From Haplodiscus bocki (taxonomy: Eukaryota): 64,000 nucleotides of DNA. Position 1 is the first letter of the stretch. Each line of letters starts with the position of its first letter. The notes under the pieces were generated by a model. The model searched no databases. It was not told where the DNA came from and saw only the letters and a program-made list of their open reading frames with translations. Location of the stretch: contig OZ296655.1 of assembly GCA_965655095.1 (NCBI GenBank), positions 33,976,001 through 34,040,000 of the forward strand, in the 5' to 3' direction. Made by a program: the position numbers and the translations under genes. Positions 8,166-33,383 of the stretch are shown one piece after another.

Positions 8166-8689
8166 GTTAGTAAAAGTGACTTTATTTACTACAGACATCT
8201 TGAAAGTAAAAGAAACCAAGATTACCTTATTCATATGCAAAAACTGGCGTTAACTATTTTTGCAAGTAAAAATGGACTCTACATCAATTGGGACCAAAGA
8301 CATCTTCGGACTCGAAAGCAGATTCGGACTGAAGACAAATTCGGACTTACTTCAAAATTCGACACGAGTTTTTTCGCTAATTAGCCTAATTACTAAATTA
8401 GCAAATAAACCAAAGTCGATTTATTTTCGAAAATTAACCATTTCTATTCTACAAATTCAAATACAGATTCAAGGGCGGCATTAGCTTTGTGGTTTTGGGC
8501 TGGTTATATTTATGTTATATTATATTTTAGTTAATATCATAAAAGTTAAAGTTCCAAATTTATTCTAAAACGGCCAAGGTCGGCGCAGCCCGTAAGTCGC
8601 AAAACCTTTGAGGGGGAGCTTTTGGTGTTGTTAAGCTGGCAAATCACCTACTTATTACACTCTTAGTTTTATTTGAGTCTTTTCAAACT

Positions 8690-9139: not shown

Positions 9140-10745
9140 GGAATAACATAAATAAGATTAGGTCGGCAAAATCGATCGATGGAGAGGATAGACTGAGGGC
9201 TCACTAGGAGCCCACTTGAGAGTCTACCCCGGCTATGCCTATGGCACTGAAATGAACTAGTAAAAAATGACAAAATACCATTTAGATTCATTTTTCAATT
9301 TTTTTCCATTTTTTATACTTCGATCTTCTCTGTTGGATGAAGTGTTTCTTGAGCCCATGCTACTGCATACAATTTGGGCAGAGTAAGGCTTTTAGCAATG
9401 ACCAAAAAGCCTATTTTCAAGAATATGATTATCTTTAGTTGAGTGGTATATGCATAGCACCCAACTACGATGATATCAACAAGCCGCCAACCACGATGAA
9501 CTGTGCCAGGAAGACATCTATTAGTTGCTTTTGGCCCCGGGCAGTCATCGCAGCAATCAACGACAAGCATCAACCATCAAGATAGTCACGTTCTTACCTT
9601 TCAAAAACAATTTTTGCGAGATCTATGTTTGAAAGTATATAAAGATCACGGAACGTATTAACAAAATCCGTTACTTCGCAGTCTTTCATTGAGCCAAAAT
9701 TTTTTGGAAGCAAACCTTTCTGACTCAAAAAATTCAAAAATTTACTGCCTCTGTGCTTCAGCAAAGAAGAATGGAACGTTGATCACTTGGATGAAATTGT
9801 AAAACTGAGCAATCGAGAACTTCTAGTACTTTTTTGACCGGAATTGAGTTCTTGAAATTTTTTGAAAAAAGCAGTGGTTGAAAGATTATTGACCGACTTG
9901 CACACAAATTTTATGAGTTCATAGGCATAGAGCTCATGCACTGTTACAATTTTCACATCCTCGAAAACTTTATCCAAAGTGTTTGCTTCTAAAATAAATT
10001 AACCGAAGTTTTTTCTTTGCATTGCTAGAATTGGTTCAAGTACAGTGAAAGAAGTACATTCATAAACTAGTATGAGATATTGAACAATTGGTTCCACATT
10101 ACAAAAATAATACTTCAACAAAACGCTTCGCGGAACATAATGCCGCATTTGGGATATCACGCCTGAATGCCTGGCAAGTTTGAATCTAGTATATCTGACA
10201 TGTTCACAAAACTTGACATTTCCATCAATCAAAACTCCTAAATACTTACAATAATCATTTGTATTTTATGAAGACTCATTTATTTCAACCTGCAGAGTTG
10301 AAGCACTCCTCTTTCTGTTAAAATTAAGTAAACTCGACTTGTCAACATTTATAGATAACTTATTGGAAAGGAACCAGTCGCATATACTGGAGAGATCGTT
10401 CTGAAAACTTGCGGAGGACGAACAAACACTTGTAATGTTGGTATTGTCTGCAAACAGATACACTTGCGAGAACTGAACTGCTTTAGGAATGTCATTAATG
10501 TAAACCAGGAACAATAGTGGTCCTAAAACAGAACCCTGCGGAACTCCTGTTGTTATATTGGCCCAATCGGACGCTTGACCGTTAACTTCTACAAACTGCA
10601 TTCTTTTTGATTGATAACTTTCAAACCATTTGTTTGCGATTTCTCTAACTTCGTGAGCCTCTACTTTGTCTAGCAAATAAATTCTTGTTGCAGTACAATT
10701 TTTTTTTACTTTCCACTCGTGTAGATATGGAAGGAGAATCATTCA
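9140..10745 (-). mobile_element. 5'-truncated CR1/L2-group LINE (C-terminal half of RT plus 3' UTR), antisense in NOP2 intron 1
   Basis: Translates GVPQGSVLGPLLFLVYINDIP..YLFADNTNI and WFLSNKLSINVDKS, then KYLGVLIDGNVKFCEHV. A 3' stem-loop lies at ~9189-9226. Confidence 0.9.
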
Positions 10746-11293: not shown

Positions 11294-11529
11294 GTAAGTG
11301 GTCTGCATGTCCCTCTTCGATAGTGACAACTTATATTATACTAATTAATCAACTCAATAAAATATTGCTAGTTATAAATATTTGGATCATAATTCTTGAC
11401 CCTGTTCAAAATATTTCTTAGTCCAGCTTACCATCAACCAGGTTAAACGGAAAAAGCTTTATGAAGGTGGCAACGCCAGGTTAATAGATTGACGGTTCTG
11501 TTTTTGTTTGAACGATAAAAACCTCTGTT

Positions 11530-11865
11530 GGCGCTCTTCATTGCCGATTGGTCTTCGACCTATGTTTTGTCGACTTTGTATGAACTACATTTAAGAAAAA
11601 CCCCAAAAGAAAAAGAAAATAAAATAACAATTAGGACAAAATAATAGTGCAGAGAGAGCATCATATTGCTTTAGGCGTTATTCCCGAAATGGATTTAGAT
11701 ATTATCTCTCCCCCCCCCCCCCCCAAAAAAAAAGTGGGATAAAGATCCAAAACAGAATAAGGTCTAAAACCCCTAAAACATTAAGAGAATAACGTGTTAA
11801 ACTCACTCGGGAATAACGTCTAAAAACACAGTGTTACTAAGATACTGGAGGAGCTTGAAATTACA
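11530..11865 (+). repeat. Diverged direct repeat of ~32243-32560 (unique segment plus one minisatellite unit)
   Basis: TTCGACCTATGTTTTGTC.ACTTT.TATGAACTAC, TTAGGACAAAAT, TTCCCGAAATGGATTTAGAT, a C-run and TACTAAGATACTGGA are colinear in both copies. Confidence 0.8.
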
Positions 11866-11869
11866 GACA

Positions 11870-14800
11870 GCTGTGCTCTAGATCCGCAAATTGCAATGGG
11901 CCTTGTGCAATTAGCACTAGACGCAGATACCTCGGAAAAACTGAATCCCAACAAAGAGAGGAGCTCCTTATCCGCACATTGCAATGGGCCAAGCCATGTT
12001 CCTCGTCTGCGTCGGTGTCTGGAGCAGTCGATAAACAATTATTCGCTTTTTTCGACTGAAACAAAAAACATGCAGTTTTACATCTGACAAGGTACAGTTT
12101 TTGCATCACAACTGTGCAAAAAAAATTTCAAAAACTGATTGAAAAACATGACGTTAAAGAACATCTCAAAATTCAATTCACCGCAACAAGAAAACAGTTT
12201 CAATGACAACTTTTGCAAAAAAACAATTCCATCAAAATTCCTATATAACCTTGGGTCCAGAAAAGAAAGTGAGCAGTCATAATAATTGCAATGCTTGAAA
12301 GTCAATCTTCATTACACATCAAAAATCCACAAAAACAACATCATACAACATCAAAATTCGAAAATGTCCAAAAAAAGATTTGAAGAGAGTTGACGGTGTG
12401 CGCAAGCTCACGGTGAAATCCACGACGAACCCGCGAAAATGGTTCACAATAAAAAACGAGGTTTATGGCACACGATTTGTCTGAAAAGCTATGTAAATAC
12501 CAGTAGTCATAAAGAAGTCGCAAAAACTGAATTTCAACAAAGAGGAGCTCCTTATTCACTCATTGCAATTGGCCACTCCATGTTCTTCGTCTGCATCGGT
12601 TTATGTAGAGGAATCAATAAACAATTTTTCACTTTCGAAGAAAACAGCAAACAAACGCAGTTTTACATCTCACAAGCTACAATTTATACATTACATCTGT
12701 GCAAAAAAAAATTTATTGAACTTTATTGAAGAACATGACGTTAGAGTACATTTAAAAACTCTGTTCACCCCAACGTAAAAGGAGTTTCAATGACGTTTTT
12801 CGCAAAAAAAACAACATGAAAATTCCTACATAACATTAGGCTCAGAAGAAAGTCAAGTCATAATAATCGCAATGCATAAAATTCAACCTTCATTACACAT
12901 CAAAAATCCGCAAAAACAACCTAACATCAAAATTCAAAAACGTTCGAAAAGAAGATTTGCAAGAGAGTTGAGGTTGTGCGCAAGCTCACGGTGAAATCCA
13001 CGACAAAACCCCAAAAACGGTTCAGAATAAAAAAAACGAGGTTTACGGTACACGATGTCCCAGTAAGAGTAGTCATAAATACGTCGCTAAAACTGAATCG
13101 CAACAAAGAAAGGAGCTCGAGATCCGCAAAGTGCAATGGGCCACTCCAGATTCCTCGTGTGTGTCGATTTCTATGCTGAGTCAATCGAGAAACGCAAAGT
13201 AACTTTTTTCGACTCACACACAAAAAAAAAATTTGCATCTGGTGACGTACAATATTTACATCACGTCTGTGCAAAAAGAATCCAAAAGTTGATTGAAAAC
13301 AAGACGGCACAGAAGATCTAAAAATCTTGGTTCAATGTAGCGTAATAACAGTAATAGTATTAATTTTTTGCTGAAAAGTTCCATCCTATTTCTCATAAAA
13401 CGTCAAATGCGAAAAACAAAGTCAGAAGACATTATGCTCGTACTGGCAGAATTAAGTTTCTAAAACTTCAACAGAGCAAGCGTTTTAAGACATGAAACTT
13501 CCGAAAAGTTCGCAAAAATATACGACAATTGAAGAAGTGCACAAATTCACAGTGCAACCCAAGGAGAACACTTCCCAAGCAGCAGAAAAAGCAGACATAG
13601 GAAAAATTGATGCACTACAAAACATTTAGTTTGCACTACTAGCAGATACCTCGAAAAAAACTGAATCGCAACAAAGGGAGGAGCTCCATATCCGCACAAT
13701 GAATTTGGCCACTCCATGTTCTTCGTCTGCATCAGTGTCTCCGGAGCAATCAATAAATATTTATTCGGTTTTTTCGACTGAAGCAAAAACCAATGCAGTT
13801 TTACATCGGATAAGGTATAGTGTTTACAGCACATCTGTGCAGAAAAAACGATGCCAAGGAGTGATTGAAAAACACGAGGTTAGAGAAAATATGAAAACTC
13901 AGTTCACCGCTACGTAAAAAGTTTTGATGACACCCTGGGCAAAAAAAAACAATTCCATCAAAATTCCTATGTAAGATTCAGTCCAGAAAACAAAGTCAGA
14001 AGTCATAATGATCGCTCTGCATAAAAGTCAACCTTCATTACTCATCAAAACATCAAAATTTCACAAAAACAACAAGTTGCAACATCAAAATTCAAAAACG
14101 TTCGAAAATAAGATTTGCAAGAGAGTTGACGGTGTGCGCAAGCTCACGGTGAAATCCACGACGAACCCCCGAAAACGGTTCACAATAAAGAAAACGAGGT
14201 TTTTGGTACACGATGTGTCAGAAAAGCTATGTAAATACCAGTAGTCATAAATACCTTGCTAAAGCTGAACCGCAACAAAGAGAGGAGCTCCATTTCAATC
14301 GGCCACTCACTGTTACACCTCTGCATCGATGTCTCTAGAGCAGTCAGGAGACACTTTATCACTCTTTTCGACTGAAACAGAAAACGAATGATGTTTTACA
14401 TGTGAAAGAAAGTAGTTCACCCCGGCGCAATAATTCCAAAACTGGCCGAAGGACATGATGACGGAGAACATCTAGAAACTCGGTTCATTGGAACGCAAAA
14501 AACTGCGATGACAGCCTATGCTATAAAAAGAAATTCCATCCCTATTTCCTATTGACGTCAAGTGCAAAAAGTCAGAACACGTGATGCTTCTTATCCCAAA
14601 AGTCAATTTCCACTACATGATCGAAACTAGCATTTCGAAACATCAAAAAATTCGAAAAATTGAAAGCAGCTAAAGAAGTGCGCAAGTTGCCGGTGAAATC
14701 CATGAAAAAGCCTTGAACGAACAGCAAAAAAACGAGGTATACAGTATATAATACATAAAATAATCACTGTAAATACTAGTACTCACATACTTCGGCAAAA

Positions 14801-14890
14801 CTGGGTCGCACCAAAGTAACCTGCTCCAGATTCACAACTTGCAACAGACCACTCCATGCTCCTCGTCTGCATCGATGTTCAAAGCTGGCA
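11870..14890 (+). repeat. Tandem array of about 5 diverged ~580-bp units (satellite-like)
   Basis: The marker GAGCTC recurs at ~11961, 12545, 13113, 13681 and 14285. GTGCGCAAG..CGGTGAAATCCA recurs at ~12398, 12976, 14133 and 14678, with a degenerate copy at ~13537. Confidence 0.85.
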
Positions 14891-15289
14891 ACTCAAGCTC
14901 TGGGTGAATGAAAGTCAACAACTAGGCTCTCCGATAACATCAAAGAATGCTAGTTTTGAACAGAAGAAAATTCTGACTGAAAGCAGGTCTTAATTACCTC
15001 GTGTGTTCAGAGTATGTAAAAAAGATAAGCACCAGTGGCCTCGTGTTGGCCTACCGGCAGCACCCTCTAAAACAAGCCAGAAAAACACGCTTTCATCTTT
15101 TATTTGGAGGCTTGAGTGCTCGAAGGTTTGATATAAAGCGAAGCATTTAGATTCACAAGTTTCCGAAAGCCATCGATTTTCATTTATTTGCAGAAATTTT
15201 TTCCGAAAATTTCTCACAACAAGCAAAAAGTAAATGTATTACATTGCAGTCTCCTCGTTTTCCCTCTCTGAAAATGGGTCGTGTTTGGG

Positions 15290-16010
15290 GGAAACTTTTT
15301 GGGACATTGAGCAGAAAATTTTCCGCACGGCTATCAAAACTGCCTTGGACGCGTTTAAAATTGAAATCTTACCTCTTGGGTAAAATACTTTTAAGAAACT
15401 TCTTTGCTTTTTCGGACTGATAGCAAAGATTTTGCGACTTTAAGTCAGAGGTTTTCTGCAGGGTTGTCAAAACCACCTTCTACGTGTCCAGAGGAAGATT
15501 TTGGAGAAAAATAACTGAAGAGCTGATAGAATTGAAGACTATTCAGAAATTGAAGCAAAAGATTTTCGGACTCTGGGCCGGAATTTTCTCTTGGAATTAT
15601 CAAAACTGCGTTCGACATGTCCAGAGTAACCTTCGAGACCGAATATTTTGAGAAATGATGAGAAACTTATAAATTTTTCGGCCTCCGAGCGATAATTTTC
15701 CGACGTTTAGCGACAGGTTTCCGGAAGTGTTGTCAAACCTGCCTTGCACGTGTTCAGAGGAACATTTTGGAAGAAAAATTTTGGCAACCAAGTATATCTA
15801 TTAAAATCTTTCACAAACTTGGAGCAAAAGTTTTGGCAAGGTTGTCGAAACTTCCGAAGTGTCCAGAGGATTATTTTGACTTTGAACCAAAAATTTTTGT
15901 AGTGTGGGCCTAATTTTTTCTATAGTGTTGTCGAATTCTACTTGTCCAGAGGAGCCTTTAAAGAGGAGAAATTTGTAAACTTCTATCATATGAAAACATT
16001 TTCGGTGTCC
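15290..16010 (+). repeat. Array of ~120-130 bp diverged units (GTTGTCAAAAC..CGTGTCCAGAGGA)
   Basis: The motif recurs at ~15330, 15463, 15598, 15729, 15841 and 15927; it is the same unit as at 19-60. Confidence 0.75.
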
Positions 16011-16769
16011 AAAAATTTGATGTTCCCGGATGATTTCATCAATTTAGCAAATAGCGATATTTAGTTCGATTCGCCATTATAACTGCTCTGAACAAAAAAT
16101 GGCGGAAATTTTCACAGAGTCGACGCTGGGAGTATTAGCAAACGATCGGAAGTAAGTTATTACATAAGTGTGATTTGAAGAATTTACTTTCGCCTTTTAT
16201 TACGACAGAAAATTGAAATTTGCATAATTTCGATCTTTTTGACATACCCCTTCAGCAAAGACTAAAACAGTTGCAATATATGGACTAACTTGACTGGCTC
16301 AATATCTATGCCTATAGAACACAATCTTGAATGGGACGAGGCTCGTGTTTAGGTTATATTATGACTCAGTTACTTGAAAATCGACTGATGTGGTAAAAAT
16401 CCCTAGAAAACTATTCAATTGCTATCAAAAGTCCGCTGCGAAAAATCGGAAAAAGTGCGCTTTCGGAGAACATCTCCCAACCTACCAAAGAAAAACCAAT
16501 CAGAAATATGCTCTATCCTCATTCAGCTGTTACTTTACTCAATTCTAGCTAACACTATAGATCCTTCATTTTGTCTCATCAGGCAACTATTGCAAGGTGA
16601 AAGGTACTAAGAGCTAGTAATTCGGATTGAAAAAAAACAAGGCAGAAAAATTGTTTCCGATGATAAGTGATCATCAGGGTAGACTTATAGATTTTAACAA
16701 CCAAGTATGAAAAAATTTAGGTGCACAAAATGTTTGGGCAATTTCTCAGTACTTTCCGCTGCTAAGATT

Positions 16770-18943
16770 TCATTTATGATCGACAAAATATGGCACTTTT
16801 CTGGACCGACTTTCGGAGTCGTACTTGATAGAAAAGAGTTTGACCACCCTATCCAATGGAACGAGTGCTGTTTCACAGCTATCAGCCGCAGTCAAGTGCA
16901 GCTTCTTGCAAAAGTCCAGTCTTCCGATGTATTTCTGTATGTGATAAATCTGCACGAAAGCGTTTTTATTTGAAGAATCCGGCATACTCAAGAAGTAATG
17001 TATTTTCCCACATTCCTTTCTACCATCTTCTTCGAAAAGAACGTTACCATTTGGCGCTCTCCAGTTCCAACGTTAGCACAAAGAACCGAAGTACCCGTTG
17101 CCTACACGTGCACGCGAAAAGAATTTGTTTACTCTCGGTAATCAACTCGAGCTGCATTCACATACTCAGTCTCCAAAACATCCTTCATTAAAGTGCGATC
17201 ACTTTGAAGGAAAGAAGTTTGGCCTGACCATGAAGCAGCAATGTCACATAGGACATCATTTTCGATTTCTTCTTCCATCAGAGCCTGGTTTTCTAGATAC
17301 CGTCGACATATCACTTCGCATTGACTCACAGTTCCGGTAAACAACTGCACAAGGAATTGATCAGCGGGTTCGAAACACATAGCGGAAGACACAAAAAGAG
17401 GGCCAAACTGAGTTGATAACTCAAATGTCGCAGGCAATGTAAGTTGATAGTTTCACACTTCTCTGTTCGGAAAATGTCTACCGCTTCGCAGCAAAATGTA
17501 TCCAAACAAGCCTCAGCCACCTGAATCTAATCCTCCACGAAGTTTCCAAGAGAAGGCTTATGCGGTTAACTAACTGCAAGTAATGATGATTCACTTTATC
17601 AGGAAGCCGATTCCGCAGAAAATTAATGCCGACGTAAAGGAGGTAATTGTAAAAACTCATTAGCTTTGAAATCTTTCAGATCTGTTAATGGACGAACAGA
17701 CCGACCATGATTGAATAAATCACATGGAAGCGAAATTTTTTCGAGGTGATTATTGAAGTTTTCCAAAAGTTTCCGCTCAGTCATCAACTTATTATGCAAT
17801 TTGAAAAGGAACTGGTGCACACCAATCAAGTTAATGCATGCAATCTATGCATGCAGACAAAGGTAAGGCAGGAATTATATCACTGAATGCACTTCTACTC
17901 TTAACACCCACTACATTAGTCGAGCTGTGACCACCTTCATTTAAAGTCTCCGCAAACTGTACGCATTGTTTGTTCATGGAACGTGGATTCTCGAACGCGG
18001 AAGTCTTGCTTATAGGGGTAATAGCAGTGGTGTCGATCAAAGGTGGCACCGCAAGCTGTGCAGTAGCAGCAGCCGAAGTGACCATTGTGTTGGTACATTG
18101 AGTCAGCTACTAACATGATTATCTTACAACGTATCTGTACGGTCGTCCCCAAAGAGCTCCAAACAACAGGAAGTTTCAAAGCTTCTAGTTTGATGTGAAA
18201 TATAAAGGCTTCAAAGACAGGCTTTTTGGCACTAACAAACAGACGCAAGTACTTTTTTTCTGAGATATTCTGAGACGTGGTGGCAACTGCGCTGAAGATA
18301 ACCAAATTGGCCATAGTATGCGGTGAGAAGAAGACTTTATAAAGGTAACGCCATCAGGAAGAGTGTGAAATCTATAGCAATTATGTTTTCTTCATTGGGG
18401 AATGTTAACTTGGAATTCGGAATAACGTTTGTTTGATAAGTCGCTTTCCGCTCAGCATTGTATTTCAAAATACTTGAAATGTTCTTTTTCACAACGCTGA
18501 CAATTGAACTGGAAAACTTGAGAACACAAACACGTCCATTTGAAGTATCGATCATTGTAGCAGTGAACTCAGCGAGTCGAATTTTAGAAGATTAAACCGC
18601 AGTAAAAGACGAAGCCATCCCGTTATCTGGCAGCAAAAGCGAATGATTCCTGTTAAACAATCATTTTGAAGCGACGTCGCTCAATTTAAAACGATCGCAA
18701 AAGCATCGGGCGATTAGATTGGTGTTCTTTTTTTCTGATTCTGGAAGAAGGATAAAGTAACTGGGATAATGGCCTAAGCTCTTCGTCCTCATTCTGGAAA
18801 ATAGCCGAAAGAGGCTCAAAGTTTTCATTTATGGAAGAAATGTCGACCGATTCCAAATCTGCACCGTTTGAAACTGGCGAGGATGCAAAAGGTCGAGCAG
18901 ACACCATCGGCGTGGAAGTAGTTGCCTCTGGAGACATAGGCAA
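16770..18943 (-). mobile_element. CACTA/EnSpm (CMC superfamily) transposase pseudogene
   Basis: Ordered, frameshifted motifs: MYQHNGHFGCCYC, GVKSRSAFSDIIPALPLSACIDCMH, RSVRPLTDLKDFKANEF/YNYLLYVG, TINLHCLRHL and QFGPLFVSSAMCFE, ending ..PYFVDHK*. Confidence 0.88.
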
Positions 18944-19423
18944 TTATTGCTACAGGAAAGAGCGAAATTTTAGTGGAACAGCTCGGAAAATTCAAAAATC
19001 ACCGAAGCAGATCCGAAAAAGCAACCAATTGTGAAAAAACTGAGAAAAGAATGTAAATCAGTACCAATGTAGAAATGTGAAACATCCATTAAAGGATGCG
19101 AAAAACTGCTCTTAGAAAAGCTCACTGGAAAAAAGCGAAAATAAGAAGTTTCATGCAAATTTAAATTTATATCTGGAAGCGAGCAGAGCAACCATCAAAA
19201 CCGGCGGTGTACAGATAAAAACTTTTGAAAAACTGCAAAACAGGAGCAATTTTCTAGTATCACGCCAAAAATGCACCTCCAGTTCCTCGGTCATGACCAG
19301 GGGGTTAGAAACTTCAGTTAATTGAACTCTTGCTGGAAGTGTAGCCGATTCAAAATGTTCCTCCCTCAACAAATCTTCTGACGACCAAGCGATTAGATGC
19401 GTATACTTTTCAACTCCCATTTC

Positions 19424-20565
19424 CTACTCTCGAATTCTTGCAGCGTTGGACAACCGTCGCGGAGAACACCAACTTTTCGACTTCTTCCTGGGCGGTAGAG
19501 CAAAGTCATTCGCAATCTCGGCGATATGCCTCTCCGATGTTTCAATTGAAACGGGTAACGGTCTCATCTGCAACATTCGATCCAGTCTCGAGTTGGTAGG
19601 CCATTTGTTCAGAAAGTTTGGCGGGTCTGAAGGTGTCTGATGCGGCTTTCTCATTTGCACAAGTAGCACGTAGATATTTCGGTCAAAAAACTCTTCGCTA
19701 TATTTCACGAGCAACTTATCACCGGGTGTAATCTTTTTCAAAGTTCCAATTTGAACTAATTCGTCTGTCCTATCAAATTTATTTCGGCTGTTGGGGTCGC
19801 AATCAGAATTCAGAAAGCGAATGGAACATAGCACCAAAATACGGACCTCTTCTTTGTTTTGACGTCAAATAAATTGTCGGAACTGGGAGAACCTCGTCAG
19901 GAACGGCCGCTAAATGTCCCAAGGAACCGTCTCTCAGAATGCTTTTGGCAGGTATTTCGAGGTCTCGTATATAAAACAATCTAAAGCCACCGAAATTGTC
20001 ATGACGAATTAAATAAAATATCGACCCGAGAGTAGGATTCTTTCAGTTTTTTATAACATCTCGCCAGATCCGGATTGGCTCGGAGCTGTGAGCTGTGATC
20101 CAAACTTTCGCTCAGAATGTAATCTTAGAACTGTTCTCGCTTCGCGACCATCATACTCGACCATCTGCTCAACCAGTTGCTTATCACACTGAGCCAACAT
20201 CGCCCCCGGAAAACACTCGCTGCTCTCAACTGATTTGCAATCAAAACGACAACATTTTATTCAAGAAACCAAGATTTTAAGTTGAGAACCACGACGAAGT
20301 TCCGGTCCGATTGAAGATGTCATTCATTCCTGTAGCTCTGCTGGATTTTTGGACCAAATTTACGGCTGTGTCATTCGTTTTTCGAAACCTGCGTATTCAA
20401 TGCTCCAATCAATTCTGAAAACAGGCCCCTACGAAATCGCGCAATACATCCTCGTGACGTTCACAAAAGCCCTCCAAAATTGATTGTTGGTGTTCAAAAC
20501 ACGACGAGTTTGGTACAGAAAGCCGATGAATTTATGAAACCGTTTGTCCTAATGTCACTCCATTT
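19424..20565 (-). pseudogene. Decayed gene with a SUV4-20/Set9-like SET domain (~19659-20040)
   Basis: It reads GGFRLFYIRDLEIPAKSILRDGSLGHLAAVP and then, after a frameshift, ILVLCSIRFLNSDCDPN..TLKKITPGDKLLVKYSEEFF. YLRATC follows in a shifted frame and may be a decayed post-SET CxCxxC. A stop-interrupted reading frame extends upstream to ~20565. Confidence 0.72.
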
Positions 20566-23500
20566 CTGTCTTCTCAACTTTAGTATGAATGCATGTCAGC
20601 TACTGCACCTAAGTACAGGAGTTTACAACTACAACATTGACGTTGAGCGCGAATAAGTGTTGCCTGTTGGAGGCGGTTAATTGAGAGTGCCTCTTTTTTT
20701 ACAATTTCCAAAAATTAGAAATATACCACTCTCGATTAAACGCCACTGCAATCTACGCCATGACGTCAGAAGTGTCAATTATAAAACTTCCGATACAGCG
20801 CAAGTGCAGTAATTGTCAAAAACACGATTTCAAGTACAGTGCTTCAGCTGAAGTTATAATTGCAAAATTGAGGTTACCACAAATGCTCAGCTAACTTTGC
20901 TACACTTGTCAAGTTACGTTACGAATGCAACAACTGACGTTGGAAAGACTGACGTTCAGACTTTTGGAGTTGAAGAACTTGGTTGAAAAAGGTCATCAGG
21001 TGTCTTTTTATCGCACACCTTCCTTTTTCAATCAACTAGCAAAAACGTTTAGTAAAAAATCTTATCGCTATTGGTACCTAAAAGTTACAAAAAACCAACA
21101 AGCGGCCTTTTTTTGAAAAGCAACAGCAAAAACCTCAGCAAATAAGATAAATATCTAATCTAGGCAAAACAGTCAAAAATCCGGATACTGAATCATCGTA
21201 TAGGTTTCAAATTGGTTGCTAAAGCGCAACTTTCTGGAAGTCAAACACATTGCATGCTTAAAACAAGAGTCACCATAAGGGTTGACTTGTGCATGATGGG
21301 TCTATATTATAAATCTTTTGTTACAGTCAAAAAAGTCTCTTAAAAAGGTGAAAAGGGATCCGCTGTTTATCAGACAAGCACTTCAATCAAAACTTATTTG
21401 AACATCGAAGAGTTTATTTCTATGAGATTGGAAGGGAAGAAAAGTATCCAGAGCTGCATGATTTTTTGAATACGAACTTGTCAAAATAAAGCAAGATGTA
21501 TGTACAGAATCATGTAACAAACATTGTGTAGCATCATTTATCATAAAGGTTTCAAAGGGCACTAGTGATTAAGAGGGAACTAACTTGATCGCCTTCAAAC
21601 AATAATTAAAAGAACTCGCGTAAAAGAAAGAACCAGACATATCTGAAGTCTCTATAAATTTCTTCGGCATGGTTACACAAAATCCAGTTCAAAAATCATT
21701 AAAAAGCGTCAAGGGTTAAAATCAGTCTGAAGAAAAGGAAACAGTTAGTGAACAGACTGGCTGAGTATATCAGTTTCTGGAAGTATCCTTCAATATAAAA
21801 AGAAAATATACAGTAAACAAAGGACCATAGTTGGTTACCGAAAAAAGACAGCAAATTAGATGGCACCAGTTGTCCCAAGGAGGTGAAGCTCAACAAACGG
21901 AGAAATCTCATGACTAAAAATTCATTTAAGACAGTCATCATAAGGGTTAACTTATTAACGACCACCCGGTTGCGGTATGAAACAGAATACGAGGCTCTTC
22001 GTCAACGTTTTTAGACGTTAGACCTGCGTTTTCTACTTGACTTTCCGAAAACTTCTTCATCATCGATATCATTATCGGCCGCATCTTTTTCATATGCGTT
22101 CACAAGCTCAAGAGTTGCTTCGGCCAGGATTGTGCTCCCGAGATCCCTCTTTTCGGTTGAACATTGGGAGACCGAGAGAGCAGCTTTCAATTGATCCAAT
22201 TCAGCTTTCTTTCAATTGTGCCAGTTACGCTCGCTCACCATGCTTTTGAATCTACCTCTGGCCTCTATCTATGTATCAATAGGTCCATTCGGGTTTTTCC
22301 GCTTGACAGCCTCTGAAAAATAATTGGGTCCCAGATTTCTATGAAAATGAGAACGGTACACCTAAAACAATCGGACCGAAAAGTGCGAATTAATTTCGAA
22401 CAGATTAGACCTTTCCCACATTACTTTCGGGGCGTTTTTGTCAGCTGGTGAATACGGGCTGTAGGACGGAGCGATTCTCCGCAGAATTTACCTAAAATGG
22501 TTTCAGGCAGAAGCTAAGACATTTACTCGACTTGCAGGACGAATATTCTTGCTGGCCACCAAATAATACATCGCCGCTTCTCTACAGAATAAACAAACAA
22601 ACATCACTAACTACGTCTTTCAAGACTTGGCCTATCTTGTAAGTTCCAGCAACGTTCCTAGAAGTAATAGTTTTGATTGTCTGATTGGGAGATGAAATGG
22701 ACGAATCAACACGCTCCAAGGACGCTAGTCAATTTATTGAGAACAGGATGAAGTTTCGCAGAATCTAGCAGCACCTAGACAAAAAAAAACTCAAGCGTGT
22801 TAGTCACAATTGACAGGCAAGGAAAGCAGCAAAATTGAAAATAGCGTAAGCTTTGAAGCTAATCGGCTAATGCTTGCTGCAGAAATTTCCATTATTTGAA
22901 ATTAAAAAGTCAGTCGATTAGACTTCCGCTCACAAATGAAACACCACTTCGACGGTTGTGGGGCTTGCATCCTGGTGAAGTAAGCGATATCTCCAGGGGT
23001 AAACACTTTCTTCCGTTTGGCATTTAGAGGTGTTGTACTAGCAAACTCAGCACTGAACTCAGATGAAAGATCTGCCAGGTCAACATCAGGCACCGCATCA
23101 TCGGGGCCACGCAAGTCAGTACCCTTTGAAAGGAAACTGTTAGTACCGCAGCTACAAGTTAGAGACCGACGTTCGGTTCAACCAAATTCCAAGAGCTGCC
23201 ATAAAGGGGACGATTGGTTTGGCATCGAGACATATGAGATGCGAAACCAAACAAGGCTCCAGATCAGGCGTAAAACTTGTACACTACGGAAGATATCTTT
23301 CATGACTGCTTGCGAACTCCCAAAAGTTGAACGCAAACAAACCGTGAAAAGCCACCTTTAGGGTGACAGAATTAACAAGATACCAACGGAATGAAAAGAT
23401 CTAAAAGTACGTGATAACGTCAGACCTGTACGGTTGGCGGAGTCGTTATTGTTGTCACATCGATATCCGCAGCACTGCCGAATTATTCAACGTTGGTGCA

Positions 23501-23569
23501 TTCTGATCCATTTGTCGAAACACTATAGGAGGATTGTCGCAGGGATACGGCAAGCCTTTGCAAAAATCC

Positions 23570-24210
23570 GACAGTTGTTACAGGAACGTAGTGACATAAT
23601 CCTTCGGGCCTCTTGCATACTTTTTGCATGTATACATTGTCCTGGTGCCTTTGACTTTAACAATGCTCTTCTCCTCGAACGGTTTCCAAAACCGAAGCAT
23701 CAACGATCAGTGTCGCTTGAAACCCACATTTCAGAGCGGCTACCCACAACTCCATGCAACATTGATCACTTATGCACAAGGATGGACCATTGTAAACAAA
23801 GGAAATCCTTCACGCAGTGGATCAAGTTCTGTGAGCACGTGAATAGAGTGAGAAATGAAACCCCACATAACGAAATGAACGAATCTAATTAGCGAGAAGC
23901 TTACCCTAATTTCAGCTTTTTCTGTACTTCTTCCTTGAATGCTATCCGACAATTGCGGTCTAACGAAGCTCCGACCATCATTTAAGAAGTACAATCAGAG
24001 GTACGTGGATTTCAATGTCTCTTTAATTGAATACTCAACATCGTTAAAACTGTGATGGAGAGAAGCCGGAGGTCTTGTTTTTTGAGCAGAGCTAGTGGTT
24101 TGCGAGATTTTGAACTGAAAATGGAAGAAAGTCTTGAAGAACATGCCAAAAATACACGAGTTCGCGCTGCTCGTAAAGCTGAAAACACCCATAGGACGGC
24201 ACCTTGTCAA
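23570..24210 (-). pseudogene. Possible OTU-like cysteine protease remnant (duplicate at ~27897-28530)
   Basis: SANSCIFGMF (Cys 24154-24156), MELWVAALKCGFQATLIV and GLCHYVPV (His 23591-23593) occur in OTU order. There is a candidate 76-bp GT-AG intron at 23829-23904. Confidence 0.4.
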
Positions 24211-25149
24211 ATTTCAGACTTTCGACTCAGAGGCGAAGCTGGGCTTTGCAACACTTGCTCCAGTGGAATACTACTGAACAAAACAAACAAGTTTGAATAT
24301 TTTCCGAAGGAGTCACGGTAATACGACAACTACTAATAAAGCAAACAGAAGTTCAATTACTCAGTTAGTTCAATAAAATTTTTATACAAGTGTAACAAGT
24401 AAGATATGCGATCGCTCATTTTATATTGAAGCAGGCGCGCACGCTGGAAAACAGGCAACGTGCAAAAGTTCCTGCAACTGCGCTGGAGTACATGAACAAT
24501 TTTATAGCCACACAGTTTACAAAACCTAGGCAGCATTGGAATGTAGGCGCAAACGCGAGTTTTGAACGGATCGGGAAGAAAGAATCAAGCCTGTGGTATA
24601 ACACTTGCTTGCGCAAGATTTATTAGAAATATCAACTGAAGTTTCAAGGAATTTCTGCGCCAATTGTTTTGGGCAAAAGAGCGTGCGAAATTTCAAACAC
24701 TACTTACTTAGAAAGTTGGTTGAAAAACGTTTTTGCAATTGAAAGTGTTAGTTTCGTCCAACGGGAATTAAGAATAGAAATTCTGTGATGCACACCACCC
24801 ATGTAGCGCTGAAAGGGTTGATTAATTGAAGAGTATTCGTACTGAAGAATCACATTTAACAAGTGGTAGGAAACAAACTGACCTCCAAAGCCGGCTGAGA
24901 TGCCGGAACTTACACAAGTCTCAAATCAACTTAATGTTCAAAAAGTAGGTAGGAGTATTATTCCTCGTTGCAAAATAAAGGCGATGAAAAACCAATCTCA
25001 GAAAAAGCAACTTTTCTGGAAAAAATAATCTACAATTGCATGACAATGACAAGGTTTTCAAAACTCAAAATAAGAAGCAAAGCTGGCATGTGAATGTAAT
25101 GCCCCTATAAGGGTGACAATTCACCGTGAAATTCCATTCTTTATGATAG

Positions 25150-25960
25150 TGCTTAGCTGACGGCATCCGGTCTTGTCAAATGAATGCGATCCACCAATTT
25201 GACGATATTCTTGTACTAGAGTCTTTTGTCCACTCCCACAAACCGAAAGAACATGGGATTCCTGTGCAGTAGTTCATTTGTCATCTTGATGTAACAAGAA
25301 GTGTCAGTTTGTCGCCTCGGGATGCCCATTACGTAGACCATCTTTACCATAGACTGGAGAATCCTGGCGATTCGGCATATTTCGTCGTAGACCTAAGTAA
25401 AATCATGGGCAGCAATAAAGTTAGACAATAAACTCAGCGACACTATCGAAAGCGTCAAAGAAAGTGATAATTTTGGTTGGACTTGTAAAATTCGGAAAAT
25501 GACGCAATGAAGTAACCAGAATTTTTATGTCTTGAGCAATCAAGTATTGCATAAAAAAGCTACTTTATTCCAGTATTCGGAAGAAACTCCTATTTCTCTG
25601 CTCAATGAGAATCAAATTCTTCAAGTAAGGTGACTCGCTAGCCTTACAAGTTGCATTTTGATACCAAGTATAGCACAGGCCATGGGCGAACTGCGTTGAA
25701 CCAGTGAAATCATGATAGAACGCTGCACGAGAAAATCAGTTTTGAGAAAACAACAAAAAATTTCCTCAAATGCTGACATTTCGGCGCGATCTGCCGTTTT
25801 TCCACCGTCCATGAAAACAATTTCCTGCAACTAAAAATACGGACGAAAACGTTAGATTTAGGAAACGGATTCCTTCAAAGATATCCCACGGCATGCCTTT
25901 GGAAACTGCTAATGTGCTACACTCCTCGAAAATCATTAGAGAGCAGATAGTCCCCAGCCG
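25150..25960 (-). pseudogene. Possible SGNH/GDSL hydrolase-fold remnant (partial duplicate at ~29470-30065)
   Basis: Fragments are AGDYLL (GDSL-like), TLAVSKG..D, VFLVAGN, VYVMGIPRR..IKMTNELL and DRIHLT (DxxH). There are many stops and frameshifts. Confidence 0.38.
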
Positions 25961-26562
25961 GAAGGTACGCGCTGTCTCTGCATTGAAGAACACATTTGAA
26001 CTCGCAGCCATTTTAATTAGCTGCAAACTGACTCATAGCAACTGAAAAACATAAGCTCTCCAAAAAACTGTTCGTAAACAGGATCCACTGAGGATTCAAA
26101 TAGCAGATCCAAAAATAGGCTACGTCTGTACCACCGATGATGCTGAAACTTAACTTTCAAGAGTGATTGATGTGGTGTTTTCTCACCAGGGAAGGCATGC
26201 TTCAAAAGACCCTAAACACGAAATACTAGACAAATAACCGGTCATCAAACCAAATGAGAAGATATAATCGGGTACCCTTGCAAAGTTTACGGCAATTTTG
26301 GCTTGATTTTTCTGATTCTCGGTTTTACACACAGACAGGGCATGAACTTATCACAGAAGGCATTATTTGTCTTCTCCCGGTACTGTAAATGATAACATAC
26401 CGTTAACGTCCAACGAACTGGATAAGCGATCCTAAATCACAAACCTATAATCCCCGAAGACCGGAATAACCAAATGATCAAAAACTTAAGATTAACAGAT
26501 GAGATCTCGTTATCAAGGTTACTCAAACGTACGATAATCGATGAATTTAGTACAGATCAATG

Positions 26563-26662
26563 CACGGGTTCGAATCCCAGTCTTCAGCCAGTTCTTTCTT
26601 TTTATATAGGTATCATGAATGAATGTTTTTCCTTCCATATACGAAATATGGGCGGAAATAAG
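26563..26662 (+). other. tRNA-like B-box/3' half, T-tract and terminal hairpin module (copy at ~30658-30752)
   Basis: GGGTTCGAATCCCAGTCTTCAGCCA is followed by a T-rich run and then TTTTCCTTCCATATACGAAATATGGGCGGAAAT. Confidence 0.55.
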
Positions 26663-26721
26663 AAATGAATTTCTGTTAATATTGTAGAACCACCTTGACC
26701 TTTGTTTTAGGTTGAAACCTA

Positions 26722-29700
26722 AACTTTCTGGAAGTCAAACACTGATTGCATGCTTAAAACAAGAGTCACCATAAGGGTTGACTTGTTCAAGATGGGTCTC
26801 TATTATAAATCTTTTGTTACAGTCAAAAAAGTCTTAAAAAGGTGAAAAGGGATCCGCTGTTTATCAGACAAGCACTTCAATCAAAACTTATTTGAACATC
26901 GAAGAGTTTATTTCTATGAGATTGGAAGGGAAGAAAAGTATCCAGAGCTGCATGATTTTTTGAATACGAACTTGTCAAAATAAAGCAAGATGTATGTACA
27001 GAATCATGTAACAAACATTGTGTAACATCATTTATCATAAAGGTTTCAAAGGGCACTAGTGATTAAGAGGGAACTAACTTGATCGCCTTCAAACAATAAT
27101 TAAAAGAACTCGCGTAAAAGAAAGAACCAGACATATCTGAAGTCTCTATAAATTTCTTCGGCATGGTTACACAAAATCCAGTTCAAAAATCATTAAAAAG
27201 CGTCAAGGGTTAAAATCAGTCTGAAGAAAAGGAAACAGTTAGTGAACAGACTGGCTGAGTATATCAGTTTCTGGAAGTATCCTTCAATATAAAAAGAAAA
27301 TATACAGTAAACAAAGGACCATAGTTGGTTACCGAAAAAAGACAGCAAATTAGATGGCACCAGTTGTCCCAAGGAGGTGAAGCTCAACAAACGGAGAAAT
27401 CTCATGACTAAAAATTCATTTAAGACAGTCATCATAAGGGTTAACTTATTAACGACCACCCGGTTGCGGTATGAAACAGAATACGAGGCTCTTCGTCAAC
27501 GTTTTTAGACGTTAGACCTGCGTTTTCTACTTGACTTTCCGAAAACTTCTTCATCATCGATATCATTATCGGCCGCATCTTTTTCATATGCGTTCACAAG
27601 CTCAAGAGTTGCTTCGGCCAGGATTGTGCTCTCGAGATTTCCCTTTTCGGTTGAACATTGGGAGACCGAGAGAGCAGCTTTCAATTGATCCAATTCAGCT
27701 TTCTTTCAGTTGTGCCAGTTACGCTCGCTCACCATGCTTTTGAAACTACCTCTGGCCTCTATCTATGCATTAGTAGGTCCATTCCGGTTTTTCCGCTTGA
27801 CAGCCTCTGAAAAATAATCGGGTCCCATATTTCTATGAAAATGAGAACGGTACACCTAAAACAATCGGACCGAAAAGTGCGAAATAATTTTCGAACAGTT
27901 GTTACAGGAACGTAGTGACATAATCCTTCGGGCCTCTTGCATACTTTTTGCATGTATACATTGTCCTGGTGCCTTTGACTTTAACAATGCTCTTCTCCTC
28001 GAACGGTTTCCAAAACCGAAGCATCAACGATCAGTGTCGCTTGAAACCCACATTTCAGAGCGGCTACCCACAACTCCATGCAACATTGATCACTTATGCA
28101 CAAGGATGAACCATTGTAAACAAAGGAAATCCTTCACGCAGTGGATCAAGTTCTGTGAGCACGTGAATAGAGGGAGAAATGAAACCCCACATAACGAAAT
28201 GAACGAATCTAATTAGCGAGAAGCTTACCCTAATTTCAGCTTTTTCTGTACTTCTTCCTTGAATGCTATCCGACAATTGCGGTCTAACGAAGCTCCGACC
28301 ATCATTTAAGAAGTACAATCAGAGGTACGTGGATTTCAATGTCTCTTTAATTGAATACTCAACATCGTTAAAACTGTGATGGAGAGAAGCCGGAGGTCTT
28401 GTTTTTTGAGCAGAGCTAGTGGTTTGCGACATTTTGAACTGAAAATGGAAGAAGGTCTTGAAGAAGAACATGCCAAAAAATACACGAGTTCGCGCTGCTC
28501 GTAAAGCTGAAAACACCCATAGGACGGCACCTTGTCAAATTTCAGACTTTCGACTCAGAAGCGAAGCTGGGCTTTGCAACACTGGCTCCAGTGGAATACT
28601 ACTGAACAAAACAAACAAGTTTAATTATTTTTCAAAGGAGTCACGGTAATACGACAACTACTAATTAAGCAAACAGAAATTCAATTACTCAGTTAGTTCA
28701 ATAAAACTTATATACAAGTGTAACAAGTAAGAAATGCGATCGCTCATTTTATATTGAAGCAAGCGCGCACGCTGGAAAACAGGCAACGTGCAAAAGTTCC
28801 TGCAACTGCGCTGGAGTACATGAACAATTTTATAGCCAGACAGAGTTTACAAAACCTAGGCAGCATTGAAATGTAGGCGCAAATGCGAGTTTTGAACGGA
28901 TCGGGAAGAAAGAATCAAGCCTGTGGTATAATACTTGCTTGCGCAAGAGTTAATAGAAATATCAACTGAAGTTTCAAGGAATTTCTGCGCCAGTTGTTTT
29001 GGGCAAAAGAGCGTGCGAAATTTCAAACACTACTTACTTAGAAAGTTGGTTGAAAAAGGTTTTTGCAATTCAAAAAGTTAGTTTCGTCGAACGGAAAGTA
29101 AGAATAGAAATTCTGTGATGCGTACCACCCATGTAGCGTTGAAAGGATTGATTAATTCAAGAGTATTCGTACTGCAGAATCACATTTAACAAGTGGTAGG
29201 AAATAGAGTGACCTCCAAAGCCGGCTAAGATGCCGGAACTTACACAAGTCTCAATCAACTTAATGTTCAAAAAGTAGGTAGGAGTATTATTCCTCGTTGC
29301 AAAATAAAGGCGATAAAAAACCAGTCTCAGAAAAAGCAACTTTTTTTGAAAAATAATCTACAATTGCATGACAATGACAAGGTTTTCAAGACTCAAAATA
29401 AGAAGGCAAAGTTGGCATGTGAATGTAATACCCCTATAAGGGTGACAATTCACCGTGAAATTTCATTCTTTATGATAGTGCGTAGCTGACGGCATCCGTT
29501 CTTATCAATGAATGCGATCCACCAATTTGACGATATTCTTGCACTAGAGTCTTTTGTCCACTCCCACAAACCGAAGGAACATGGGATTCCTGTGCAGTAG
29601 TTCATTTGTCATCTTGATGTAACAAGAAGTATCAGTTTGTCGCCTCGTGATGCCCATTACGTAGACCATCTTTACCATAGACTGGAGAATCCTGGCGATT

Positions 29701-30810
29701 CGGCATATTTCGTCGTAGACCTAAGTAAAATCATGGGCAGCAATAAAGCTAGACAATAAACACAGCGACACTATCGAAAGCGTCAAAGAAATTGATAATT
29801 TTGGTTGGACTTGTAGAATTCGGAAAATGGCGCAATGAAGTAACCAGAATTGTTATGTCTTGAGGAATCAAGTATTGCATAAAAAAGCTACTTGACTCCA
29901 GTATTCGGAAGAAACTCCTAATTCTCTGCTCAATGAGTCAATGAAAATCAAATACTTCAAGTAAAGTCACTCGCAAGCCTTACGTGTTGGATTTTGATAC
30001 CAAATATAGCACAGGCCACGGGCGAAGTGCGTTGAACCAGAGCAGATAGTCCCCAGCCGGAAGGTACGCGCTGTCTCTGCATTGAAGAACACATTTGAAC
30101 TCGGAGCCATTTTAACTAGCTGCAAACTGACTCATAGCAACTGAAAAACAGGCTCTCCAAGAAACTGTTCGTAAACAGGATCCACTGAGGATTCAAATAG
30201 CAGATCCAAAAATAGGCTACGTCTGTACCACCGATGATGCTGAAACTTAACTTTCAAGCGTGATTAATGTAGTGTTTTCTCACCAGAAAAGGCATGCTTC
30301 AAAAGACCCTAAACACGAAATGCTAGACAAATACCGGTCATCAAACCAAATGAGAAGATTTAATCGGGTACCCTTGCAAAGTTTACGGCAATTTTGGCTT
30401 GATTTTTCTGATTCTCGGTTTGACACACAGACAGGGCATGAACTTATCACAGAAGGCAATATTTGTCTTCTCCCGGTACTGTAAATGATAACATACCGTT
30501 AACGTCCAACGAACTGGATAAGCGATCCTAAATCACAAACCTATAATCCCCGAAGACCGGAATAACCAAATGATCAAAAACTTAAGATTAACAGATGAGA
30601 TCTCGTTATCAAGGTTACTCAAACGTACGATAATCGATGAATTTAGTACAGATCAATGCACGGGTTCGAATCCCAGTCTTCAGCCAGTTTTTTTTATATA
30701 GCTATCATGAAAGGGTGTTTTTCCTTCCATATACGAAATATGGGCGGAAATAAGAAATGAATTTCTGTTAATATTGTAGAACCACCTTAACCTTTAAGGT
30801 TGAAACTTAA
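26722..30810. repeat. Tandem duplication, copy 2 (4.1 kb, two internal deletions)
   Basis: Colinear with copy 1 but lacking the equivalents of ~22404-23574 and ~25705-25940. Confidence 0.93.
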
Positions 30811-31239
30811 GTAGAATTTGTCAGCACTGTTATATGGTTTGCCCGATACAGAAATCATCATGAAACCAAGATGATCTGCATGAAAAATTTCCCTGGCTTT
30901 CATTAGTCATATGCCCTTAGGGTTCATTCACTTGTCTTCGAAGCTCGAACGTCTGTCCAGAGCTTTCAATTTATTCAATTTATAAGAAAAATTTGTTTGA
31001 TAAAAATTAAAACGACCATACCCATCGAATACTTTTTCTTCCATATTTTGAAGTATGCGGAAAAAATGACAATTGTGTTATGAATCATTCATAATCATAG
31101 AGACAAACGGGTAGAATCCTTATCTGCAAGCTATCTGGCCTCTGTCGATAAGTTGTTGTCTGGACGTCCGTATCATTCTGAGAGAACATCATTTATCTAA
31201 AATTATTACGAAAGGGCTAAATCAGCATACATGCAATGA

Positions 31240-32640
31240 AGAATATGAATAACATCTAAAGATACAGAATGAACATCACGTGGGTTTGGACGTTATTACC
31301 AAATTTTATCGAAACGGATTTGAACGTTGTCCTCTGGATGTTATTTCTGGCCCCCAAATATGGAATATTATCTTAATTTATAGCAAGAGTGGTATTTTAG
31401 GGTTGAGAATAACTTCCGACGCGGGAATATTAAATTAAAATGACGTCTAGATAAATAATGTCCAAAACGCAGTGTACCAATGTACTGGAAGAGCTCGACA
31501 TGGCTCTTTAGGCTTCATTCCCGAAATATGGATTTAGGGGTTAATCTCCAGACGTGATTTCTGCCACCCACCGCTCCCCCCCCCATGGATTAGGATCAAA
31601 AATATCAATAGGGAATAAGATCTAAGTATATCATGTAAAGTCACTCAGGAATAACGTCTCAAACAAAATGTACTCAGATACTGAATGGGCTTGGAATGCT
31701 TTAGGCCATATTGCCGAAATGGATGTAAACGTTATTCCTATCCCCCCAAAGTCGAATTAGGATCTAAATTATCATGAAGGAATAAGATCCAAAAACGCCT
31801 AAAACATCTAGAAATTAACACGTTAAAGTCACTCGGGAATGACGTCCGAATGAGGAACGTGTAAAACATCATGTACTCAGATACTGGATGAGATTGGCAT
31901 GCTTCAAGGCCATAGTCGCGAATTGGATTTAAACGTTATTCCTGCCCAAAGTGGGATTAGTATCTAAATATCAAAAGGGAATAACATCCAAAAACGCCTG
32001 AAATATCAAAAGATTAATGTAAAAAAAAGTCACTCGGGAACAACGCCCTAAACAGAATGTACTAAGATACTGGAAGAGCTTGGCATGATTCTTAAGGTTT
32101 TACTCCCGAAATGTATTGGACGTTTCTCTTCAGACGTCAGTTCGGACCCCCACCGCCCCCCCCCCTCTCACGCAAAGTGGAAGTAGGAACTAAAACTTGA
32201 GACGATTCCGTTCCGTCGAATACTCTGATGAATTCTGAACAACGGCTCCTCATTGTCGAATGGTTTTCGACCTATGTTTTGTCAACTTTTTATGAACTAC
32301 TTTCAAGAAAAAGCCAAAAGAAAAAGAGAATAAATTAACAGTTAGGACAAAATTAAACACACGTTGGGCAAAAATCCATTATGGAGTGAGCGTCACCTTG
32401 CTTTAGCGCTATTCCCGAAATGGATTTAGATGTTACCCCTCCCCCGCCAAAAAGTGGGATAAGATCTACAGCATCAAAAGAATAACATGTCAAAGTCACT
32501 CAGGAGTAACGTCTAAATCAATAACGTCCAAAGCACAATATACTAAGATACTGGAAGAACTTGTCATGGCTTTAGGTTTCTTTCCCGAAATTGATTTAGA
32601 CGATATTCGTTACACGTCATTCCTGCCCCCTCCCCCCCCA
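31240..32640 (+). repeat. Diverged ~190-bp minisatellite array
   Basis: A TACTGGAAGAGCTTGGCATG-like marker occurs at ~31483, 31679, 31882, 32068 and 32549. CGAAATGGATTTA and AAAGTCACTC also recur. Confidence 0.8.
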
Positions 32641-32643
32641 GAG

Positions 32644-32817
32644 TGATTAGGAAATAAAAATTGAGACGTTATTCTGCTACGTCGAATGGACTCTGATGAA
32701 TTCTGAACAATATTGAATCAGCTGTGAAAATGATTAGGAAATAAAACTTGAGACGTTATTCTGCTCCGTCGAATGGACTCTGATGAATTCTGAACAATAT
32801 TGAATCAGCTGTGAAAA
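32644..32817 (+). repeat. 87-bp direct tandem duplication
   Basis: TGATTAGGAAATAAAA..CAGCTGTGAAAA occurs at 32644 and 32731 with two mismatches; a partial third copy is at ~32183-32242. Confidence 0.92.
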
Positions 32818-33383
32818 TAACTAATTTTCTCTGTTAGCATTTCTGAAAAATACTGATTCAGCTCTGAACATAGCTGATTTCTTCTGATCCGGCCATGAAC
32901 ATCGCTGGTGCAGAGATTTTTCATGTTCGCCCAAAAACACTGTTGAAACATCGAAATTAACTCCTGTAGCGTTTTTTTCCTGATTGCAGGATTAAGTATT
33001 TTTCACCTTTTTTTTGTTCTAGTAAGAAGTCGTCTGACATGGAATCAGAAGGAAATACAGATTTCGGGAAAATCACGTTTTTGGAATTTTTCAAGAGAAC
33101 CCACTAAAAGTTGTTCCGAAATTTTCGATTTCTCGTCTCTTCAGCATCAATATTGAAAAAAAAACACTTTTTCTGGCTGTTTCGATGGTCTTCGCCTGCT
33201 TGCTGCCTTCCAGTAATGTTCAGCGCTGAATCAGAGATGTTCAGAAATGTTCATCACTGAATCAGTTATGATCAGAGATGTCAAAATTAAAGTCGGCTGG
33301 TACAGCTCTGAACATCGCTGAAAACGCAAAATCTCTGAATCAGCGCTGAAAATGACTGAATATCTATGAGAGCTCAACCCGGG
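32690..33383. mobile_element. DNA-transposon end with clustered subterminal repeats and a CCCGGG terminus (CACTA/CMC-like)
   Basis: Multiple CAGCTCTGAA, CAGCGCTGAA and ATCAGAGATG motifs end abruptly at GAGCTCAACCCGGG. Confidence 0.5.

Follow-up and report, generated by a model that had tools for sequence, protein, structure and literature searches.

A SUV4-20-like SET module linked to the transposase of large CMC transposons, read from a decayed copy in Haplodiscus bocki

Is a SET-domain sequence that lies beside a transposase a separate passenger gene, or does it belong to the transposase itself? The question is raised by a 64,000-nucleotide stretch of DNA from Haplodiscus bocki (contig OZ296655.1), referred to as the window. 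A sequence-only reading of the window had described a CACTA transposase paired with a SUV4-20-like SET gene lying upstream of it on the same strand. The arrangement was confirmed, as the minus strand at 16770-20227 carried a decayed SET frame, followed some 0.75 kb further downstream by a likewise decayed DDE transposase from the EnSpm/CACTA-Mirage-Chapaev (CMC) group. We regard it as highly probable that these are the coding parts of a CMC cut-and-paste element, in a copy that is dead and truncated at its 5' end, and that the element belongs to a clade whose transposase includes an N-terminal SUV4-20-type module composed of a helical bundle, the SET domain and the post-SET zinc cysteines.

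The SET sequence and the transposase

The SET peptide quoted in the sequence-only reading was found to be real. The open reading frame (ORF) at 19424-19837 on the minus strand read ..VLCSIRFLNSDCDPNS..LKKITPGDKLLVKYSEEFF.., with the SET peptide letters ..IRFLNSDCDPNS..ITPGDKLLVKYSEEFF.., and matched the Pfam SET profile with an E value of 2.7e-4 (21.8 bits, slightly below the cut-off of 22.4). Less decayed copies of the same family scored 28.8-35.4 bits against this profile, with E values down to 1.5e-8. The degenerate post-SET motif of the window, YLRATC, had been interpreted as two transitions away from CLCATC, and this was correct because CLC(S/A)TC occupies the corresponding position in the sister copies.

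The type of the SET domain was identified with better preserved sequences. The best SET ORF of a sister copy (213 amino acids) retrieved SUV420H2 and KMT5B first from the PDB with an E value of 1.3e-7, while the next SET type followed at 1e-3. A profile built from 12 family members matched SUV420H1/H2 at 1e-26 (97 bits) versus 1.5e-12 (51 bits) for the next type, KMT2C. The fold was predicted by AlphaFold for residues 1-200 of an intact relative, P0004, giving a model with a predicted local distance difference test score of 87 and a predicted template modelling score of 0.83. The top 16 Foldseek matches of this model were all SUV4-20 structures, aligned over 212-237 columns covering the whole catalytic module with template modelling (TM) scores of 0.65-0.78, whereas other SET proteins were aligned over the core only (TM 0.46 or lower). 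The SET part is thus SUV4-20-like by sequence profile and predicted fold, as the sequence-only reading had proposed. From the N-terminal helices through SET to post-SET, KMT5B and KMT5C gave the best match in both sequence and fold. The module shared only about 20-22% identity with SUV420H1/H2, however, and NS replaced NH in the lineage of the window; H4K20 methylation is a predicted activity at most. The C of N.DC.PNC and CxCxxC were both present. All four zinc cysteines were kept, and so was the catalytic Tyr.

The canonical NH(D/S)C cofactor motif of SUV4-20/KMT5 was absent from the window family. NSDC was shared by this family and its nearest relatives, including intact and recently copied ones, and among the other clade members NHSC was kept in four deeper ones, NSSC was present in three and NND in one. 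Within the clade, His changed to Ser on at least three occasions, in the NSD group, in P0033 and in P0043/P0089, with no loss of the N..C.PN core, the zinc cysteines or the catalytic Tyr. The NS had been rightly noticed in the sequence-only reading but was taken as a hint of a divergent or pseudo-enzyme. It is not a product of decay, because it is fixed in the window family and conserved in relatives with intact, recently copied genes, and with several independent origins it is not by itself the mark of a pseudo-enzyme. From the sequence comparison, NS may represent either tolerated catalysis or lost catalysis with the fold retained.

As for the transposase, the single fragments in the window matched no Pfam family. 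Its C-terminus read ..YFVDHK before the stop codon, where the relatives end in ..F(F/L)DHK. The longer ORFs of sister copies matched DUF1258 at 41.6 bits, above the cut-off of 33.1, while the matches to Transposase_21 (20.6 bits, below the cut-off of 28.6) and Plavaka were weak; one clade member, P0015, matched Transposase_21 at 42 bits. The sister-copy ORF L007:3240-5201 (654 amino acids) showed the order D..D..C(2)C..H(3)H..E, reading ..FTDG.., ..VAD..GCCYC.., ..HCLRH.. and ..FES.., and the same order was present in P0004. This order is the defining criterion of the CMC group (PMC12730594), and the element agreed with that group also in its DUF1258 profile, its terminal inverted repeats and a target duplication within 2-5 bp. 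A search of the PDB sequences with the transposase gave no match, and the matches in the ESM Atlas were SET-less CMC clusters only, with low scores (0.78).

The label of CACTA transposase is right at the superfamily level only, because the termini are not CACTA. The ends are CCCGGG, the target duplication is 2 bp, and the best transposase profile was the nematode-type DUF1258 and not the plant Tnp2. CACTA in the strict sense, with CACTA or CA..TG termini and a 3-bp duplication, was therefore rejected. Animal CACTA elements with 2-bp target duplications are on record (PMC6004678). An assignment to Mirage proper would rest on the DUF1258 profile and on the 2-bp duplication, the latter being shown by animal CACTA elements too. 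In summary, the element resembles CMC transposons in its DDE transposase with C(2)C and H(3)H, the DUF1258/Transposase_21 matches, the short target duplication, the subterminal repeats and the large size (PMC12730594), and differs from them in the CCCGGG termini, in place of CACTA or CA..TG, and in the apparent N-terminal SET module on the transposase.

Linkage in copies and relatives, and competing explanations

Window positions 16500-20700 were used as a query against the 1.5-Gb genome from which the window comes. At least 13 long copies were detected, 79-86% identical and collinear across the whole query, all of them broken; the recurrence in at least 13 copies indicated that the pairing of SET and transposase was not due to chance. 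In two complete copies (C4a and C4b, 25.5 kb), the inverted ends and the target duplications were checked, and CCCGGGTTGA was found inverted at both ends, with 2-bp duplications of TT and AT. A sister family, 63% identical, was also SET-linked, and the linkage held for every copy and subfamily examined in this genome, which ruled out a processed pseudogene of host SUV4-20, the alternative that the sequence-only reading had itself put forward. The same reading had judged the window copy dead, in agreement with the at least five stops in its SET part and at least eight in its transposase part, the latter matching only in about eight separate pieces and thus carrying frameshifts as well.

The relatives gave the clearest view of how the two parts are joined. 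An exhaustive HMMER search with the 654-residue transposase ORF of the sister copy collected 6912 relatives. In eight of the nine long ones (30-42% identical), Pfam detected both SET and DUF1258 within a single protein; the remaining one matched the SET profile of the family itself. P0004 (1035 amino acids), P0007 (1108 amino acids) and P0037 (995 amino acids), from three different assemblies, were each encoded by a single uninterrupted ORF, and P0004 was present as four intact copies on different contigs. Outside the window, the genome of H. bocki also contained four stop-free ORFs of 1016 codons matching both the SET profile (E value of 1e-44) and the transposase. Intact SET copies linked to a transposase, which the sequence-only reading had suggested looking for, thus do exist. 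A tree was built from 94 transposase cores. The 13 rows with SET were all placed in one clade of 34 with a support of 99, and none was found among the other 60 rows; most of the SET-less rows inside the clade had an N-terminus too short to contain the module. The single-ORF relatives and the single SET-bearing clade identify the SET module as an ancestral N-terminal part of the clade's transposase and not a passenger. The description of SET as a separate cargo gene paired with the transposase was accordingly not upheld, since the relatives carry one uninterrupted ORF. A literature search found no paper on a SET-CMC fusion, with many journals lying outside its coverage.

The 1016-codon ORFs lay near C2:24980173, C4:79629351, C8:66706240 and C12:23950236, and their transposase was 31% identical to that of the window family. 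They are near-identical copies, because their SET-profile scores were identical, and by sequence they look like a cousin family that is young and may still be active. Another group of at least eight open frames, each 563-584 amino acids long (C11:41125168, C9:90891162, C10:46680202, C1:27069787 and others), matched the SUV4-20-like SET profile at E values of about 1e-31 and had no transposase match in the searches made; these may be another SET-bearing repeat family.

Several observations weigh against a SET module acting as part of the transposase in the window family: stops between the two parts in each copy, a frame at the tail of the upstream part that varied between copies in the alignment of 13 copies, the replacement of the canonical His of the NH motif by Ser, and the shared changes in the SET part. 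The first two concern gene structure. The two parts of the window family were always searched separately. The spacer of about 280 bp between them contains stops, and lacks an open frame, in each of the 13 copies; it is bounded by GTAA-type and TCTCTAG-type motifs and has 23% gapped columns versus 5-11% in the coding parts. Because this spacer looks like an intron, the gene product would be either one fusion protein made by splicing or two proteins, and because the tail frame varies, a spliced fusion is putative. The run index listed four sequencing runs from a single study for this organism, none of them recorded as RNA. The ancestral fusion may have been split in this family, so that SET and transposase are two proteins from one or two transcription units, comparable to TnpA and TnpD of En/Spm. 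The upstream frame indeed ended with a stop in 13/13 copies, a conserved ATG (MSPEA..) opened the transposase frame about 285 bp later, and the sister family showed a similar gap. Yet the relatives have one ORF, the spacer bears the GTAA.. and ..TCTCTAG motifs, and in L003 and L007, which are the best two of the copies, SET and transposase were in a common frame. Moreover, the first 20 or so residues past the ATG sit upstream of the ..ASSP.. linker motif, which is inside the single ORF of the relatives. We take such a split to be a credible possibility but do not favor it.

The other two observations concern the function of the module. Several SET enzymes depend for their activity on the His that Ser replaces here. 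Singleton changes among the window-family copies were spread evenly over the codon positions, indicating neutral decay after insertion. The ratio of synonymous to non-synonymous changes was 93 to 152 for shared changes in the transposase, versus 226 to 720 for singletons, which pointed to purifying selection. In the SET part, the ratios for shared changes and singletons were 32:78 and 100:271, and no purifying selection was detected, at low power. Constraint was also indicated by two intact copies of the P0004 subfamily, which differed by 13 synonymous and 8 non-synonymous changes, with 0 within the first 273 codons, while their flanks differed by 1.3-1.5%. The lack of detectable selection on SET within the window family, as well as NS in place of NH, would agree with SET being host sequence that was picked up passively, as a transduplicated fragment or a processed SUV4-20 pseudogene, and that has no role for the element. 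Such a capture is very improbable and already largely refuted, as the module stays N-terminal in intact transposase ORFs of relatives that are only 22-46% identical in SET, a glycine, the N..C.PN core, the catalytic Tyr and CxC are conserved among them, identity to SUV420H1/H2 is so low, and every subfamily in this genome has SET tied to the transposase. A domesticated host gene of the SETMAR kind, suggested by the same order of SET followed by transposase, has practically no probability left, since the sequence is multi-copy, lies inside 25-kb units with inverted repeats and target duplications, and has copies that decay neutrally. A single-copy, syntenic host gene without transposon ends was not what the window locus contained, and this explanation was refuted there. 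More serious is the possibility that methyltransferase activity is confined to the NH lineages, and that the module of the NS lineages has lost catalysis and serves to dock on nucleosomes. His gave way to Ser in at least three places of the clade while the fold-defining residues stayed conserved. Non-catalytic effects of SUV420H1 on nucleosomes have also been reported, according to the title of PDB entry 8t9f. The NS lineages, on the other hand, retain the catalytic Tyr and the zinc cysteines, and we lean only slightly away from a purely docking role.

The window copy and its surroundings

The SET and transposase parts are both inside one copy of a large DNA transposon of 22-25 kb. Its extent was given by five copies with 10-kb flanks, which aligned to the window from 11518 to 33383, and its features are collected in Table 1. 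The first 0.7 kb or so of the full copies (about 710 bp), including one inverted repeat, was missing at the low-coordinate end. The window copy is a fossil without likely function.

Table 1. Positions of the transposon copy and its parts in the window
Feature	Position	Strand	Remarks
Whole transposon copy	11518..33383	.	Collinear homology with 25-kb copies on other chromosomes
Tandem array of ~585-bp units, downstream of the transposase gene	11906..14878	.	~15 units in full copies
Decayed transposase part (CMC, DUF1258 type)	16770..18943	-	Conserved ATG 18937-18935; stop 16770-16772
Intron-like spacer (~280 bp) between SET and transposase parts	18957..19215	-	From the alignment of 13 copies
Decayed SUV4-20-like part (N-terminal helices, SET, post-SET, linker)	19225..20227	-	Start codon lost: GAG where sister copies have ATG
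Degenerate post-SET CxCxxC motif	19659..19676	-	TAT CTA CGT GCT ACT TGT = YLRATC, one frame off the SET ORF
SET motif RFLNSDCDPN	19790..19819	-	NS replacing canonical NH at 19805-19810
Internal tandem duplication, private to the window copy	21228..30810		21228-26722 repeated at 26722-30810, 96-98% identical; single in other copies
Right terminus	33364..33383	+	Ends ..GAGCTCAACCCGGG; flanks of all copies diverge directly beyond

The element also had an ORF-A (about 21700-22400, minus strand) and an ORF-B (23434-23892, plus strand), which were open for 255 and 141 amino acids, respectively, in some sister copies. Neither of them matched a Pfam family, and two relatives had no counterpart of either at distances of up to 10 kb from the gene. 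The differences between copies looked neutral in both, with synonymous to non-synonymous ratios of 9:24 and 9:23. A relative from another assembly, 40% identical (L041:14441-20083), likewise had a tandem array, with units of 340 bp, just downstream of its SET-transposase gene. The sequences of the two arrays were unrelated, and the position was conserved.

The copy is inserted in antisense orientation within an intron of a host gene for a NOP2-like ribosomal RNA methyltransferase. The exons of this NOP2/NSUN1-like cytosine methyltransferase were located at 6906-8381 and 35528-36031 on the plus strand, corresponding to positions 2-75 and 105-198 of the RsmB-F profile, that is, to its two halves. 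They are separated by an intron of at least 27 kb, which was filled by the 22-kb transposon together with other repeats and a fragment of a retroelement reverse transcriptase (RVT_1; 10266-10742, minus strand). This fragment lay just beyond the truncated end of the transposon. Positions 37545-63012 formed a block of repeats of about 6 kb, 92-98% identical, in direct and inverted orientations. Each unit of this block contained an ORF of 112 amino acids (40113-40451, 46418-46756 and 52420-52758) without a Pfam family. An Rfam scan of the window gave no matches.

Possible role and meaning of the SET-transposase architecture

To our knowledge, a transposase fused to a histone-methyltransferase fold is so far known only as the domesticated primate SETMAR. 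In SETMAR, also called Metnase (SET-Hsmar1), a SET domain likewise precedes a DDE transposase in one polypeptide, and a role in break repair has been proposed. SETMAR differs in being a single-copy domesticated gene with a mariner transposase and another type of SET, whereas the sequences described here are multi-copy and mobile, with a CMC transposase and a SUV4-20-type SET. Transposon-borne coding sequences resembling SET histone methyltransferases are also present in oomycetes, where HarbingerS, MuDR and the proto-Helentron carry SET genes (PMC12730594, PMC4067079); SET cargo in Helentrons, mentioned in the sequence-only reading, is thus documented (PMC4067079). Unlike the SUV4-20-like module that appears as part of the transposase here, the oomycete genes are separate ORFs in other superfamilies, and the one in the proto-Helentron is Clr4-like.

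The SET module might give the transposase a handle on nucleosomes via the H4 tail, where it would either methylate H4K20 or merely dock. Such a handle could steer integration or promote the repair of excision breaks, making the element a mobile counterpart of the SET-mariner fusion. We propose this mechanism tentatively. Anti-silencing or self-regulation, the role put forward in the sequence-only reading, is likewise hypothetical. A more specific proposition, which we consider rather unlikely, is that of an autonomous animal CMC clade whose own SUV4-20-type module acts on nucleosomes of the donor or target site as a reader or writer of H4K20 methylation, directing integration or recruiting break repair. 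If true, SETMAR would have a free-living counterpart in this clade, which among DNA transposons would also be analogous to chromodomain integrases.

The window copy is dead, and the interest lies in the architecture at the family level. The combination of SET and transposase appears in mobile elements throughout a whole CMC clade, and both this genome and other assemblies contain copies that are young and intact. With natural NH and NS variants available for comparison, the clade makes it testable whether DNA transposons use chromatin marks for the choice of targets or for repair.

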